This document shows, piece by piece, positions 4,181 through 11,526 of a stretch of DNA of 64,000 bases; the stretch's first letter is position 1, and each line of letters starts with the position of its first letter. Under the pieces are notes generated by a model that made no database searches, was not told where the DNA came from, and saw only the letters and a list, made by a program, of their open reading frames with translations. The translations under genes and the position numbers were made by a program. Origin of the DNA: Phaeosaccion multiseriatum. Taxonomy: Eukaryota; Protista; Ochrophyta, other classes. The DNA lies in the NCBI GenBank assembly GCA_965112735.1, contig OZ218954.1, positions 1,984,001-2,048,000 on the forward strand. Reading direction: 5' to 3'.

Positions 4181-6458
4181 ATGCTGCTGCATGGGCTCGG
4201 GAAGGCTGCTACTGCGGTTACGCTTCTGCTACTTGGGGTATTGACGCACAACCGCCTACTGTGCGAGGCACACGTACACAGCATCGAGAATGAGCAGCAG
4301 CAGGGCAGCACGAAAGCGGCTGCTGCTGCGGATCCAGATCCGAGGTGCGACGAGGCGAATACTCATAACTCTTGGGGGGTCCACAACAACTGCACACCCG
4401 TGTTCGACTACATCAACGACACCGGTCGGCCCAGGCCCGAGCCTTCCTTCCCGATGGTGTGGACATCACAGTGGACCATGTATATCGTAAACACTCCTGA
4501 ACAAGGCTGTGGCGACGCCAGCAAGAGAACGCCGTGGGTGGAGCACCCGCCGCCGTACAATAATCCTCCACAGAGTCTGGACCCGTCCGAGTACCGTCGC
4601 TCCAGAGGCACAAGCTTCTACGACAACACCTACCGCGGCGGTGCCGGAGCGATGATGGAGTACTATGGCGACAATCAGTGCTTGCCCATCTTTCCCCTGC
4701 TGGCCAACAACTTTTCGTGCGCCTTCGTCTCTATTGGCGATGTGGCCTACTTTCTGGACTACGGCACACAGAGCGTCCATCCAACGGAGAACGGAGCTCT
4801 GCCTCCGACCGACATTGCCACCGCCAACCCTGTGTGCTGCCTCTTCTCCAGTTTCAACCACGCGCCTCGACCTGATTTCATCAAGCATCTGCCGTACCGC
4901 CCGGAGAGCAACAGCATCGGCGACATCAACTCCTACCACAAGACGATTGAAGGGCCTGACATCCTCTTTGGGTACAACTTCTACAAGGGAGAAGTGAGCA
5001 GCAGCAACGACGCCTTTCCCGGGAACTACTCATTGCCGCACTCCTTCATGTTCTCAGGTTACCCCATTGACCCTCCGGGTGCCCCCATCGTAAGCCAGAA
5101 CTACGAGAACTTCCGTGTGGAGCAGCCAGACCCTGACCTTTGGGCGTCTATAGAGAAGTACTGCGGTCAACAGGAGGAGACACTTCAAAAGTGCCGACTA
5201 ATGCCGGAGAAGGGTCCCGGCGAGCGCCCAACACGAGGAGATGTCTGTCCGGTGTGCGTGTACGACGATTCATTGTCTTATCAAGGTGACGACTTGGCCA
5301 GCGACTCGAGGGCGGTGACGGATAAGGGGTTAGCGCATGGTGTCCCTGTGCAAGTGAAGGTACCACCTCATCGCCGATCCGCCATGGGCGAGTGGTTCTA
5401 CATGCCCAGCAACGGAAGCAGCGAGGATGGGCATCTGCCGCAGTTCGACAAGATGAACGTGTCTGCGCCCAAGCATGGCTGGGCGGACGACTCTCCTCAC
5501 GATTGGCACGGCTTTCACACCCAGTGGTCGAATCTCACTGGCTGTGTGACTCACGTCGGGGTGGGTTTACGCCGAAAAGACTCCAAGGTGTTTATGGCCT
5601 CCAGACTGAGCCTACCTCAGTCCTCCCGGCAGTGTAGCCCCATTGGAGAGGCATTGCACAACACAGAAGTCTATTCTGGTGTCATGGCCTTGACTGGATC
5701 CTTCCTCATCGGAGGAGCGGAGGCTACCGGAGGAGCGATGGTAAGAAGCAAGTGGAGCGACTGCTGTAGCCAGCCACAAACTCACTTACCCAATTGCTTC
5801 TTGATCATTCCTGTCCCTAAACAACACTCGACCATCAGGTAACCAGCGAGAGTGTATCTGAATACGAGAAGGAACGATCCGAAGTCCTCGTAGTGACCGT
5901 GAACTTCTCCTCGAGCGGCGGCAGCAACAACGACAGCACTGAGAGTGAGACCCTGGCCGGGACCTTCTCCGCCACCGTCGACGGTGCTCCCTACCAGCTT
6001 ATCATCAAAGACACGCGTCCCGGGGCGTATCATCTAACCTGGTCTCCCAACCATGACGGGACTGGCGCCGAGAAAGGTCCCACTTTTGAAGGCCCAGGTG
6101 TTGCCGACAGCGATAAGCGTAACTGTACGACCAGGTTGGTAACAACTCTTGTTTTGTGGATGTTGTGATGGAATTATGTGAGTTTGCTTTGCTGCTGGTT
6201 CCTGGCGTGGTGACGCCAAGGGATGAGAGAGGTTACCTCTGGAGCATGAGGGGGACGCAGTAGGGTCTATGTGAGTGGGGGGAGTCATGTGGATGCGTGT
6301 CGTGAGAACCTTTCCAGGCATGAGGCAAGGCTCCAGAATAAGACTGTGCTCGTCACTGATTCATCTCACTTTTCCCCATTCGCCCCTTGCTTTGTTGCTT
6401 CCCCCGTCGCGTGACCTTCTCCTCCCAACAGCCTCGTTTCATCCTTCGTAGCGCGAGG

Positions 6459-6499
<41 letters not shown>

Positions 6500-9470
6500 G
6501 AGGAGGAGGAGGAGAGGAGGGGAAAAGCGAAGGATTGCCGGAGCTGGTCATGTGGGACTTTGGGCGCTTTAGTAAGGTCCTGGGCGTGCAAGTGGCGGGT
6601 GACGGTGGCCCTGCTAGGAATAGCACGGAGGTGCTCCGCAAGTTCCGCATCAGCGGCAGAGAGGGCATCATTGAAGCTCTGAACGAAGCAGCCGCCCTTG
6701 AACAGATGCTCATGGTGCAGTACTTATTCGCGGCGTGCTCTATTCGCATCGACTACCGGGACGAGCAGGGCATTTCTCTGACCGAGCAGGGGCGTCGTGC
6801 AGAAAAGAGTCGCGAGTGGAAGCGGATCATCTTGAAGGTCGCGCAGCAGGAGATGAGACATTTGGCGTACGTGCTCAACCTCCTAACGGCAGTGGTGAGT
6901 GGTGGAGTGAGTGAGCGAGGGAGGGAGGGAGGGGCGGAGGGGCGGAGGGAGGAGGGAGGGAGGGGGGGACGGAGCGAGGGAGCGAGGGAGGGAGGGAGGG
7001 AAGGAGGGAGCGAGGGAGGGAGGGAGCGAGGGAGGGAGGGAGGGAGGGAGGGAGGGAGGGAGGGAGGGAGGGAGGGAGGGAGGGAGGGAGGGAGGGAGGG
7101 AGGGAGGGAGGGAGGGAGGGAGGGAGGGAGGGAGGGAGGGAGGGAGGGAGGGAGGGAGGGAGGGAGGGTGAGAGTGATTGAATGAGTCATTGGAGTGCGG
7201 AAGGGGGCTGAAAAATGGGCAGGTAGTAGTAGAAGTATATGTCTCCATGCCGCAGCACAACAGCCCTCCTGCTCCATAGGGAACCATTGCCTTACCAATT
7301 TGCCTCTGCTGCGTTTGTGTGTATCCCGCGATGGAATAGGGAGGGGCCCCCAATCTGCAGCCCCCGAATCTGCCGGTGCTGAACCGCTTCTATCAGACCG
7401 AGCAAGGTGGAGAAGGGATTCCCATGACCCTCGAGCACTTCTCCCCCGAGACTTTGAAACGATTCATTCTCTTTGAATCTCAGGTGTGTCAGTGAGCGAG
7501 CGAGAGAGAGAGGCAGGGGAGGGGAGAGGAGGGGTTGCCGCATGAACTCGCCAATATCCAATGCCTTGAAACGAACTCTCACCTACCATCTACTCTACTC
7601 ACGCTGGTTGATACACACGCACGCACGCACGCACGCACACACTCACACAGGGGCCCGAGGTCGCTCACGAGATTTCTGCTACCCCCGCACCAACGGAAGG
7701 CGTTGCTGCCTTCGGTCTACCAACGGAACGCTTTGCTGCCTTCGGTCTGCTCCCTCCATCGTACCGAGGTGCTGGCAATCAGCCCCTGTACAACTCTGTG
7801 GCTGACCTGTACACGTGCATATATGGCGCCATGGAAGACATGGGAGAAGAGAATGCATTCTTGGCCAACAACCAGCTGCACTTACAGAGCGGGCTGGGCA
7901 GAGGGGCCGTAACCGGTACCAAGGGGGTTCCGTTCGTCATCACAACCCTCGCTGAGGCATACACTGCCATAACCGCAGTCGTGGAGCAGGGCGAGGGTGG
8001 AAGCATGTCCGACCCTACTTCACACTTGGCGCAGTTTCTCAAGGTTTACCGTGAGGTGCAGGAGGAGAACTTCACCGCGGCCTACCCTGTTGTGCCCAAC
8101 CCCCATGTCCGTGTCCTCCCTAAGGGGATAGGTGTGCCAGGTAAGCTTCTCCCCGCGTGGTGGTGGTGGTGGTGGTGGTGGTACGTGATAGTCTATCTAC
8201 GGATGCACATAGACTTGTAGGTACACGCACTCACACACACAAGCACGCATACACACACACATACACGTGCGCGCAGACACACGCACACGCACGCACACAC
8301 ACACACGTACACGCACACACACGCACACACATATACAGCAGTATGAAACTTCGTTCCTCCCCCCTCCACCTCTCTCTTGTGAGAAGGGCGCTTTTGCTAG
8401 CTTGACACCTCCGCCCGTGATTAACGCCAGCAGAAAGCACACCTTCTCACACACACTCTGTGCATCCGTCTCCCTCAAACGCTTGCACGCACGCACACAC
8501 ACCCACGCCCGCACACACGCCCCATGCTCAGCAAACACCACTTTCATCTCCTCCCTGCTGGATGAAGGACGATCCTACCGAGCCATGGTCCTCTTCAACG
8601 GCGCCTACAGCCTGGTCCTCAAGTGGCTGTACCAAATCTTCGCGCTCACTGGATCTGTCGTGGAGCGGGACACTGTGGCCTCTCTTGCGCTCTTCCCCTA
8701 CATGTCCGAAGTAATCATGCCTCTTGGTGACTGGCTGGCGAAGCAGAGAACGGCGCCCGGCACAGGCGTTAACCTCGGCCCTTCCTTCGAGCTGCCGGCC
8801 TTTAAGAACGTCCAGACCCCCAGCACCACCGCGTCTTTCGCCGTCTCGCTCGAGGCCCTGACCAATCTGCGCGCCGACTGCTTGCAGGTTCTGTAACGGC
8901 TCTTATCCCTTGTTGCTTACTGCTTGCTGCGTGCACCTGCTGCAGCAAACAAATGAACCACCCGCCCGCTCCCGGACCCCCACCCCCCCCACCCCCCACC
9001 CCGCCTGCTACCCTCCTTCTACCTGCCGCCCTCCCTCACGCAGGTGGCCAAGCTGTTCAACTCGTCGGAAGTACAAGGTGTCGCGGAAGGAATTCGTCTC
9101 ATCCACGACGAGCTGCAGGCTAGAGTACTCTCCGCTGGCGGTTTCAACTTGGCTACGTGGAAGTACGATCAGTATTTATGGGATCACAGTTACAGCGAGG
9201 CTGTGGATAGATACGAAAAACTCCCTGACAAGCCTCCTGTGGTCCACGAAGGCGAGGACAATGTGTTGGCTGTCAGATTCAGCGGATGGGCACTGGCAAG
9301 GCTCGCCTCCGACCCGGTGCGTGGCTGGTGGGGGCAGTGGTGTGTTGTGTTGTGGTGCTCGCGCATCGGTGCTTATTAGGTGGTCAGCAGGCGTTTCTGG
9401 GCAGTGGGTTGGGGTATGGTGCCTGGTCTTGCTTGCAGCAATATTCGTACCGCACACGCACGCACACACA

Positions 9471-9548
<78 letters not shown>

Positions 9549-10498
9549 TGAATGAGCACAAGCACAATTGAACTAAAGATGAACCTGACGAACGTGATGT
9601 GTGATGCTATCTATGTGCCACGAACAACTTTCAGGACTCATCCAATCACCCTCGTGGCGTCTCCGGAAACGCCTTCGCTTTCGGCAACGAGCCGGACCTC
9701 GACCGTATCATTCGCTTCCAGCTCGACCCCTCCGAACGAACCCTTTTGCAGCGTGAGCTCTGCATGGACGTGGGGGTCTACGTTCGGAACGCATCCATTC
9801 GTAATGGCAACGACACCGTTGTGGTCGAGCACTTACTCGGGGCCAGCGTGGATGTCCTGGGCAAGCCGACGTTTGTCGGCATCAATCACGTCATCGCTCA
9901 GGATGGGTTGGAGCCGGTCGATCCGTTCCACTTGTCCATAGAGAGCAAGGATCACGCACGGGTGCTGTCACGCTCTACTCGTGACTCGCCCCCCATGACC
10001 AAGATGAGTCCACTTGAGCGGGCAGGCTGTGGTCGCTTTCCCGTGGGTGTGAGCCTCGGTAACTACCCGGCCATCGTCGCAGAGGCCAACAAAGTCACCA
10101 ACCCGCCGCTGCCTGAAGATGCAGATAAGTACTGGCCTACGCGTATCGACCATCTGAATAAAACCCTGCAGAACGCGGACAAAGGCGGACAAGGAATCAG
10201 CAGCGACAGCGTTGCCATGTTGTCGGCGCGCTTGTTCGACTTGGACACACGCATGGGCGACAGGGGCTCAACGCGCACGCGTCGTCTTCAGTTCAAGCTT
10301 GACTTTGAACACCTGCTGTCTGGAGAGGGACGGGACAGCGGGGTGGTGAAAAAAAGTAGCATGTTTGGTCGTGGTGATGTGGAAAAGGTGGAGCTGGTGA
10401 GGCCCTGGAGAGTGAAGTACTCTATGTCGATGTACGATACAGACTGCCTCACCTTCTTCGTCAATGGCACCTTGCTGATCCCGTTGCCTGCTGCCTGA
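4181..10498 (+). CDS. Secreted multidomain protein (~1481 aa): signal peptide, putative LolA/ependymin/VioE-like beta domain, unknown middle domain, VioB/RebD/StaD-type ferritin-like domain, C-terminal RFSGW/EPDLDR domain. Exons 4181-5740, 5839-6134, 6432-6894, 7340-7483, 7651-8140, 8532-8887, 9044-9316, 9635-10498
   Basis: All seven introns are GT-AG with matching phases (0,2,0,0,1,0,0). Exons sum to 4446 nt, one open frame. Hydrophobic N-terminus (AVTLLLLGVLT). Ferritin-like motifs: LNEAAALEQMLMVQYLFAACSI, VAQQEMRHLAYVLNLLTAVGGAP, TLKRFILFE, AITAVVEQGEG..SHLAQF, LFNGAYSLVL...VIMPLGDWL...GPSFE. Confidence 0.85.
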
Positions 10499-10718
10499 CG
10501 AGTGAGTGAGTAATTGGTTCCTCGCTTGTGATTGCCTGAGCCAAGTAGCTAAAAACGTACTTCGCTGCGGACGGCGGAGGGCGTCATGCGCACCACACCC
10601 GACCTCGACCTTTGTGCTTGCTGCAGCAGCAACTGTTACATGGAGAGTTGGTATAATTGTTTCTTTTTTTTAATTAAAATTAAAAAATTAAACTGATTAA
10701 TTTTAAATTTAATTTCAA

Positions 10719-10950
10719 CAGTCGATTTGCGTAAGAATCGCCCAAATCACCCCCGATACATTTTTTGGACGAACTCCGCGAAATGACGCTGGGATAAGCG
10801 CTATAGCTCTTCGTGTAGCTCTTTGAGATGCCTACCGACACATAGTCTCTTCCCTTCCCTAATTTTCAGCATTTCCGCAGGAGCACTCCCCCTTGCCGCC
10901 CGATCCCTAATTAAACGGGCGATATGGGCGATTCTTACGCAAATCGAGTG
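10719..10950. mobile_element. MITE copy 1 (~232 bp), ~30-bp terminal inverted repeats
   Basis: Left end CAGTCGATTTGCGTAAGAATCGCCCAAATC; right end GATATGGGCGATTCTTACGCAAATCGAGTG (near-perfect reverse complement). Internal sequence (aaatgacgctggga.aagcgctatagctcttcgtgtagctc...gagatgccta.cga...catagtct) is shared with 22318-22579. Flanks are degenerate (TCAA/TCAT). Confidence 0.85.
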
Positions 10951-11526
10951 TCATTTAATGATTCATATAACTTGTTAGAAGATGAAAGCTGCGTCGTCAT
11001 ACAATACACACAATTGGACAGGTCAATGTAGAGGTCTTGATGTGATGTCCTCCTCCTCCTCCTCCTCCTCCTCCTCTTGGATCTTGTTCTTACTTTAATT
11101 GATCACTGCATGAAACCTACCGTTGGGCCAAATGGCATCAATCAGAGCATCTAGCACCAAAACTGGGCTATCCCAACACCGCGCTACGCAGGCAGACCGT
11201 TACACCCTCCTCGTTCTGGCGTAACCGATTCTTGCCGTCGCAGAAGGGCGAGAGCGGCTGGGGGCAGTAAACAAGGGTGACTGGATGTGAATCCTTCTTC
11301 TTCCTCGGCGACAATACACCATTTTGAATGCATTCCCCACATGTCTTACACACACCATTACGCTCGCGGATGCCCAGGCCCTCACTCCACTCCGCTCCAC
11401 TCCACTCCACTCCTGCTCCTGCTCCATTCGCCACTCCCCTACCCGCCCATCGGCTCACGGGGGCGTGTCTCCCCGCTCAGCTTTCATCTTATGCAACAGT
11501 GCCTGAGCCTTCCTCCTCTCCTTCCT

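Follow-up and report, generated by a model that had tools for sequence, protein, structure and literature searches.

A locus of bacterial origin in the alga Phaeosaccion multiseriatum, probably one eight-exon gene that joins a VioE/LolA-fold domain to a PF12902 ferritin-like module

VioB, StaD and RebD, the iminophenyl-pyruvate dimer synthases of bisindole pigments of the violacein and indolocarbazole type, contain a PF12902 ferritin-like domain with the motifs E...QYL, EMxHL..V.NLL, GEG, SH and GP.FE. A domain of this family, with the same motifs, is encoded in the genome of the ochrophyte alga Phaeosaccion multiseriatum. The analyzed DNA was a stretch of 64,000 nucleotides (GenBank assembly GCA_965112735.1, contig OZ218954.1, positions 1,984,001 to 2,048,000 of the forward strand), referred to below as the window, and all positions are counted from its first letter. 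At 4181-10498 the + strand carries what we consider to be a nuclear algal locus of bacterial origin, most likely a single eight-exon gene for a secreted protein of 1481 amino acids (aa), a reading to which we assign a probability of about 0.55. The predicted product would comprise, in order, a signal peptide, an N module with a hydrophobic-cavity fold, a linker of ~345 aa, a PF12902 module (F) with candidate metal ligands, and a C module.

Several described systems resemble parts of this locus. The open beta-sheet or 'baseball glove' fold of the N module is shared by VioE (PDB 3BMZ, 2ZF3), the ependymin-related proteins (6JLA, 6E8N) and LolA (Foldseek expectation value, E, about 1e-5). Eukaryotic PF12902 genes of probable bacterial affinity occur in fungi, where they adjoin lodA/lodB-like quinoprotein oxidase genes; no fusion to an N domain is reported for them (PMC4417212). 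Bacterial relatives of the N module are located in ebo/EDB clusters (the EDB cluster of Pseudomonas fluorescens NZI7, and clusters of cyanobacteria, Myxococcota and others), together with a protein here called U, and in P. fluorescens they follow eboE and eboF. Scytonemin export, nematode repellence and thallusin have each been connected with these clusters, whose role has long been in question. Expression of the Pseudomonas EDB cluster, which consists of six ebo homologues and extra genes of unknown function, led to tryptophan-derived indoles, including new indole dimers (reviewed in PMC12904256, PMC9655573), and some of the non-ebo open reading frames (ORFs) of EDB carry signal peptides (PMC6282210). 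A literature search turned up nothing that deals with the N, U or C families, or with a link between N and PF12902.

Gene structure and the F-C part

When the eight + strand exons (4181-5740, 5839-6134, 6432-6894, 7340-7483, 7651-8140, 8532-8887, 9044-9316 and 9635-10498) are joined, they form an ORF of 4446 nt, corresponding to 1481 codons and a stop codon. All seven introns are of the GT...AG type, 98-445 nt long and consistent in phase. This reproduces exactly the gene model of an earlier note on this DNA, in which eight fragments had been spliced through seven phase-consistent introns into a ~1481-aa protein. The local DNA is eukaryote-like (~57% GC), and in its unspliced form a 553-codon ORF begins at 4181 and is followed by shorter ORF pieces lying between microsatellite-rich stretches.

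The central part of the product matches Pfam PF12902 collinearly over three exons. Exon 3 contains the first part of the F module (6646-6894; profile positions 1-55, 45.2 bits against a gathering cut-off of 22.3 bits), with E709, E759-x-x-H762 and N768; exon 4 (7340-7483) continues the match (positions 56-102), and exon 5 (7651-8140; positions 124-220, 30.2 bits) adds G-E936-G and S-H946. The boundary between exons 3 and 4 falls exactly at profile position 55/56, where intron 3 (445 nt, 6895-7339) splits the domain. Alignments with bacterial F proteins cover exons 4 and 5, run across introns 4 (167 nt, 7484-7650), 5 (391 nt, 8141-8531) and 6 (156 nt, 8888-9043), and include exon 6 (8532-8887), a C-terminal extension of the module with the motifs LFN..Y and GPSFE. 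In blastp, algal aa 692-1134 matched a whole bacterial F protein (~400 aa) with 31% identity (E 3e-35). The alga has kept 43 of the 56 F columns with at least 90% conservation, including E709, E759, H762, N768, E819, E936 and H946, and the ferritin-like motifs listed in the earlier note are all present on conserved columns of the bacterial family. On this sequence evidence the F module (aa 691-1135) is a true PF12902 member, as that note had claimed for the central domain. A search of solved structures with an F-family profile returned a single relative (E 8e-15), PDB 3HL1, a 317-aa structural genomics entry entitled 'Ferritin like protein' whose title names no function and for which no C partner was seen.

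The C module (aa 1177-1481) begins with 18 residues encoded at the end of exon 7 (9263-9316) and, after intron 7 (318 nt, 9317-9634), continues in exon 8 (9635-10498; aa 1195-1481 and the stop codon), which is matched by standalone bacterial relatives. The remainder of exon 7 (9044-9316), as placed by blastp and tblastn, encodes the end of F (to ~9139) and the F-C linker. Residues 1177-1476 align with a whole bacterial protein of ~283 aa (30% identity, E 2e-31). The 31 standalone relatives of C are ~280-295 aa long and were matched with ~99% coverage and 26-34% identity; the invariant residue is present in the alga at all 20 invariant columns of the family. There is no Pfam or NCBIfam model for this family. 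The AlphaFold2 (AF2) model of C (predicted local distance difference test, pLDDT, 73) consists of a beta-barrel and a helical hairpin; Foldseek found no match to it, and the best VIA-align score (Z 5.9) lies below the noise level of the tool. A weak Atlas shape match (TM 0.42) leads to a cluster of ~600-aa proteins.

F and C form a near-constant pair in bacteria. Of the 86 C loci, 77 have the F gene immediately before C and in the same orientation, and at two others the tail of F alone is visible at the contig edge (79/86); of the remaining loci, five are on contigs too short to tell and two (L107, L148) have no F. In four long-contig contexts the C gene overlaps the stop codon of a PF12902 gene encoding 399-415 aa, and fused F-C proteins of 680-820 aa recur. 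Given this near-constant adjacency, the overlap and the recurrent fusion, C is a translationally coupled or fused partner of its F subtype, and the two make up a fixed functional unit that may have reached the alga in fused form. The bacterial F-C pairs and fusions (for example P0146, 704 aa), annotated only as 'ferritin-like domain-containing protein' or hypothetical, show the same conserved residues as the alga, but have no N domain, signal peptide or introns; algal aa 695-1481 are collinear with them from end to end (29% identity, E 2e-54). The algal F module is closer to this C-linked PF12902 subtype (E 3e-35) than to the subtype linked to U (E 3e-8).

Introns 3-7 are secure, being validated independently by homology at the sequence level: by the collinearity of PF12902, by the whole-protein alignments, by the single high-scoring segment pair (E 2e-54) that aa 695-1481 form with one fused ORF on a 70%-GC metagenomic contig (L120), by the conserved N-terminus of the bacterial C family, which is matched across the exon 7/8 junction, and by tblastn matches that end exactly at the exon edges 6894 and 9316 (bacterial C residues 1-18 running up to 9316). 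We consider the F-C part of the gene certain.

The gene is rich in microsatellites. A (GCA)11(GGA)5 tract in exon 3 (6460-6520) encodes poly-Ala/poly-Gly; intron 3 contains ~270 nt of (GGGA)n (6900-7170), intron 5 (TGG)8 (8157-8180) and CA-rich repeats (8220-8320), and intron 7 (CA)n (9455-9550). Short-read contigs break at 6449-6526 and 6900-7000.

At one bacterial locus (L086:5744-19003) the F-C pair lies between divergent genes for LodA and a LodB-like flavoprotein, the same neighbours as those of the fungal PF12902 genes (PMC4417212), and a complete ebo cluster (EboA, TatD, dehydroquinate-synthase-like or DHQS-like, AP_endonuc_2, Phosphodiest and UbiA). At another (L090:10854-14579) the C gene is followed, with an overlap, by the gene of a 1241-aa Guanylate_cyc/AAA_16/TPR protein, and a ~1134-aa protein family recurs at 9 of the 25 longer C loci according to a crude clustering. 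Further fusions of the F family (among P0229, P0232, P0162 and P0168) join PF12902 to a CDGSH zinc-finger/truncated-haemoglobin region (~1040 aa) or Cupin_2 to F-C (820 aa); the added parts may be built-in redox or oxygen-binding partners.

The N module and its bacterial neighbourhoods

The gene model begins at 4181 with the first start codon past an in-frame stop. The first 30 codons (4181-4270) specify a basic n-region, a 13-residue hydrophobic core and a c-region of small residues, and aa 3-21 are the most hydrophobic 19-residue stretch of the 1481-aa protein (Kyte-Doolittle value 1.62). These features, judged by inspection and hydropathy, make an N-terminal signal peptide plausible.

The N module (aa 56-345; 4346-5215) was delimited with bacterial homologues, a family hidden Markov model (HMM), an AF2 model and Foldseek. 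An exhaustive search with exon 1 against 1.84 billion representative sequences gave 82 relatives, all of at most 426 aa; the best are 45-51% identical and cover only algal aa ~40-357. The N-family HMM matches the algal N with E 6e-81 over HMM positions 7-273 of 282, and the invariant residues of the family are present (G143, E160, Y162, C167, F171, C180, C220, P229 and F233). N genes were found in 206 bacterial species; the named members, from Sorangium, Myxococcaceae, Symploca and Vibrio, are listed as hypothetical proteins. The bacterial proteins (~300-360 aa) have signal or lipoprotein leaders and conserved cysteines. The partner domains on both sides of F are thus bacterial in type, in line with the earlier note, N with 45-51% and C with full-length matches of 26-34% identity to bacterial proteins.

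Even with E values up to 1 allowed, no Pfam or NCBIfam model, including those of the LolA, Ependymin and VioE families, matched the N domain. AF2 modelled aa ~60-345 with confidence, and all 32 Foldseek matches with E of at most 1e-3 are ependymin-related proteins, VioE or LolA, with EPDR1, VioE and LolA at the top. In VIA-align comparisons VioE (3bmz_A) ranked first (Z 11.9, root-mean-square deviation 3.2 Å, 160 of 185 residues) but was effectively tied with EPDR (Z 11.0) and LolA (Z 10.2). Judged by these models, the N domain is a member of the LolA/ependymin/VioE fold superfamily. It differs from the described members in sequence (9-12% identity) and in length (~290 aa against ~190), and by its conserved cysteines and export signal. 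VioE is not known to carry an export signal. The likeness to VioE extends to gene context, since the N family, too, is genetically linked to VioB-like enzymes.

This link was seen in the neighbourhoods of bacterial N genes. A PF12902 gene lies within 10 kb of N in 46 of the 85 N loci; when only loci of at least 15 kb are counted (n=59), 57 encode a ~640-aa U protein, 33 a PF12902 protein and 30 an EboD-type DHQS-like protein. No Pfam model exists for the U family. The C-terminal ~85 residues of U map to VioB positions 515-599, and the F protein that follows maps to VioB 662-889; in one genome the two are fused in a single 988-aa ORF (L049:10879-13842). Being collinear on VioB and fused in that genome, U plus F looks, from sequence, like a split, distant VioB-type enzyme. 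In Pseudoduganella the genes for N, U, F, U, F and a DHQS-like protein overlap head to tail, and in the cluster of Pseudoduganella violacea (L025:10870-16921) U followed by a PF12902 gene occurs twice. The closest relative of the algal N, from a metagenome-assembled genome of Myxococcaceae (L091:10001-20771), is encoded beside two U-PF12902 pairs and the genes of an ABM monooxygenase, a VTT/DedA membrane protein and an Amino_oxidase protein, the last belonging to the Pfam family of VioA; the layout is reminiscent of the early steps of violacein and indolocarbazole formation.

At other loci N lies directly after a complete ebo cluster. Pseudomonas fluorescens ISL-33 (L063:3566-15021) has a co-directional array of eboE, eboF, a gene for a 380-aa protein, U (786 aa), N (307 aa), a gene for a 429-aa protein, U (604 aa) and a gene for a 365-aa protein with a weak strictosidine-synthase-like match; the gene order is the same in L093. 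The 380- and 429-aa proteins, which are paralogous and occur at 24 loci, take the place of PF12902, which is absent from the N arrays of the Pseudomonas type. The 365-, 380- and 429-aa proteins were also considered as divergent ferritin-like proteins, and they proved not to be ferritin-like. The genes of this array may well be the 'additional genes of unknown function' described for the EDB cluster. At a further locus (L175:3659-8062) the genes eboF, eboC, eboA and eboB are immediately preceded by U, a PF12902 gene of the F343 type and N, one after the other. Both U and N are broken into different frames there, probably by long-read sequencing errors, hence the 426-aa N entry in the database.

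N and F-C were not found together at any of the 85 N loci, the 86 C loci or L175, and no C locus contains U. The algal protein has no U module according to the U-family HMM and hhalign, and the 64-kb algal window, unlike the ebo/EDB clusters, contains no ebo gene; no homologue of U or LodA and no other gene of these clusters was found in it either. With a C-linked F, no U, and no bacterial locus that holds both N and C, the algal gene mixes parts of two kinds of PF12902-centred clusters. The proposal that several genes of one bacterial operon had been fused is therefore not borne out, as N goes with the other PF12902 subtype and with U, which the alga lacks. The related idea of a Rosetta-stone link stands for F and C, a near-obligate pair, and for the adjacency of N to PF12902 described above, but not for N with F-C. 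It was also observed that the window holds few conserved genes.

One gene or two, and the origin of the locus

The point on which the single-gene reading turns is the junction between N and F-C. Exon 1 continues past the N domain with a tail (aa 346-520; 5216-5740) and is followed by intron 1 (98 nt, GTAAGA...CAG; 5741-5838), exon 2 (aa 521-619; 5839-6134), intron 2 (297 nt, CAG/GTTGGT...CCAACAG/C; 6135-6431), which is the critical one, and the head of exon 3 (aa 619-690; 6432-6645), a poly-Ala/poly-Gly linker of the form (GCA)n(GGA)n whose coding signal is ambiguous. The support for introns 1 and 2 consists of the form of their splice sites, the open frames, and the codon usage of the exon 1 tail and exon 2. 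The tail scores positive in frame 0 alone; exon 2 (third-position GC content 0.66) reaches +0.17 bits per codon in frame 0 but falls below zero in the others; the introns score negative. The linker (aa 346-690) is lineage-specific and modelled with low confidence, with pLDDT below 50 in the exon 1 tail, and no homologue was found for any part of it, aa 346-520 being covered by the exon 1 search described above. Two ideas about the linker were tried and dropped: hydropathy revealed no transmembrane segment that would reconcile an exported N with a cytosolic F-C, and HMM and hhalign comparisons rejected a reduced U domain. Within the exon 1 tail, at 5412-5502, one sequencing run (X3) gave short alternative contigs, each differing by one letter, at a depth of 4-16 compared to ~450; these may represent a minor allele or sequencing error.

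The alternative is that there are two adjacent genes of bacterial origin, one for a secreted N protein (exon 1 with or without exon 2) and one for a cytosolic F-C protein starting at an ATG at 6565, their adjacency being due to joint arrival or joint work. Without splicing, translation would stop at 5840 after exon 1, and the frame of exon 2 stops at 6166; the next in-frame ATG, at 6565, lies 33 codons ahead of the F domain, behind an exon 3 head that is of low complexity. Bacterial F and C proteins have no signal peptides but N proteins do, fused F-C proteins that lack N are seen in bacteria, and an N-F-C protein is found nowhere else. These facts fit two genes. Further points weigh against the single-gene reading: introns 1 and 2 are spanned by no homologue, no N-domain protein longer than 426 aa exists among the 1.84 billion representatives, an N gene is missing from all 86 C loci and a C gene from all 85 N loci, and the sequence runs of the organism, from one sample, are all genomic (over 5000-7000, four of them gave unspliced contigs without joints, as expected of genomic DNA). 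With no long N protein and no locus with both N and C, the N-F-C combination would be unprecedented; and with exported N, non-exported F and C and no transmembrane segment in the linker, the fusion would move F-C into a new compartment. The earlier suggestion of retargeting to secretion accordingly fails for N, exported already in bacteria, and could apply to F-C alone. On the functional side, the same reading is weakened by the N-VioE likeness, which exists at the level of fold only (9% identity) and is tied with those to ependymin and LolA, by the F-C pair, which has no recorded substrate, cofactor or activity, and by C, which has no confident structural relative. Two separate genes would nevertheless have to account for the 270 further codons of open, coding-like frame that follow the N domain, for intron 2 sites (CAG/GT...polypyrimidine-CAG) that are phase-compatible and, like those of intron 1, similar in form to those of the validated introns, for the ~400 nt left to hold a 3' end and a promoter, and for a frame upstream of the ATG at 6565 that is open back to 6415. 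The GC content falls to 44% in an A/T-rich tract just past the stop codon (10501-11000), and no comparable drop is seen in intron 2, a weak hint that this intron is no intergenic spacer. We consider a single fused N-F-C gene somewhat the better supported by the sequence (about 0.55-0.6), and two genes a real possibility, at odds clearly below even.

The resemblance to VioB also has to be weighed. The algal protein could be conceived as a true VioB/StaD/RebD dimer synthase that makes a violacein- or indolocarbazole-like bisindole pigment in the alga, given its PF12902 match, the shared motifs, the VioE-fold domain in the same chain, and matches to the VioB equivalog model TIGR04492 in exons 3 and 5 that, although weak, fall at fitting VioB positions (597-690 and 793-855). 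However, where the cut-off is 1250 bits, these matches score 19.9 (exon 3) and 12.8 (exon 5), and the other exons gave none. The ~590-aa N-terminal region of VioB is missing, as neither the VioB model nor the U family, its split counterpart, matches algal aa 1-690 or 1101-1481; instead, the alga has a C partner not seen by the VioB model, a LolA-like N domain and predicted secretion. The window holds neither a gene for a VioA-type oxidase nor any other gene of the pathway, and the algal F is of the C-linked and not the U-linked subtype. A permuted VioB, with C as the VioB N-terminus, likewise found no support, with no VioB-model match on exons 7-8 and an hhalign probability of 0.9% for C against U; the weak Atlas shape match of C was the single hint in its favour. 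By sequence, the protein is not a VioB/StaD/RebD orthologue, and a bisindole synthase in the alga is very improbable; of the VioB/RebD type proposed in the earlier note, the Pfam-domain level remains and the equivalog level falls.

As to origin, no search (exon 1, C or F family) returned a eukaryotic relative closer than the bacterial ones. In the N-domain tree the branch of the alga is long and sits close to the base of the main bacterial clade, nearest to an Acidobacteriota sequence and an uncultured lineage, with no support for any donor. Since no closer eukaryotic relative was found and introns interrupt the conserved domains, horizontal acquisition followed by intron gain, which the earlier note had inferred, appears well supported from sequence. 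All three modules are bacterial in type and have no close eukaryotic relatives, as would be seen in bacterial contamination, an assembly artefact or a decaying pseudogene. Contamination is excluded, though, by seven GT-AG introns of the spliceosomal type, with eukaryotic microsatellites, inside conserved bacterial domains, and the composition of the locus equals that of its flanks; contigs from several runs of one sample cover the locus contiguously, no exon is interrupted by a stop, and the alga retains the invariant residues. Such explanations are already largely refuted, and we consider them hardly credible.

Possible function and significance

The single-gene reading implies the following mechanism. 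The gene would have arisen by horizontal transfer and later intron gain, with F-C possibly already fused on arrival, and the fusion would bring all three modules into the secretory pathway. F and C would carry out the O2-dependent oxidation or coupling of an aromatic substrate, possibly derived from tryptophan, and N would bind the hydrophobic or reactive product and steer what becomes of it, in the way that VioE handles what VioB makes. The analogy with VioE and VioB is based on the repeated linkage of N genes to U plus F and to amino-acid oxidases and on the indole dimers obtained by expression of the EDB cluster. By this analogy we infer a secreted oxidative enzyme with a VioE-like capture domain.

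A more far-reaching version is possible, but rather unlikely. The protein would be a self-contained extracellular machine, a single secreted polypeptide in which a VioE-like capture domain, a PF12902 oxidase and its partner act on an aromatic metabolite, perhaps one made from tryptophan, and turn it by oxidative coupling into a compound that serves as pigment, signal or defence, together with ebo-type genes of the alga's own; in bacteria, N and U would form the VioB/VioE-like dimerizing system behind the EDB indole dimers.

N and C are widespread bacterial families that are now given a first functional context, C as the fixed partner of one PF12902 subtype and N as an exported protein of the VioE/LolA fold whose genes accompany those of VioB-like split enzymes in ebo/EDB clusters. 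A true algal fusion would provide direct genetic evidence for cooperation between an N-type domain and a PF12902 enzyme, and a clear case of bacterial biosynthetic genes that were transferred, fused and intronized in an alga. The wider result may outweigh the algal gene itself: unnamed families, one of the VioE/LolA fold and one of ~640-aa proteins, are tied to VioB-like ferritin domains in the ebo/EDB clusters of hundreds of bacteria, a sign that many bacteria maintain a so far unstudied enzyme system beside their ebo genes.

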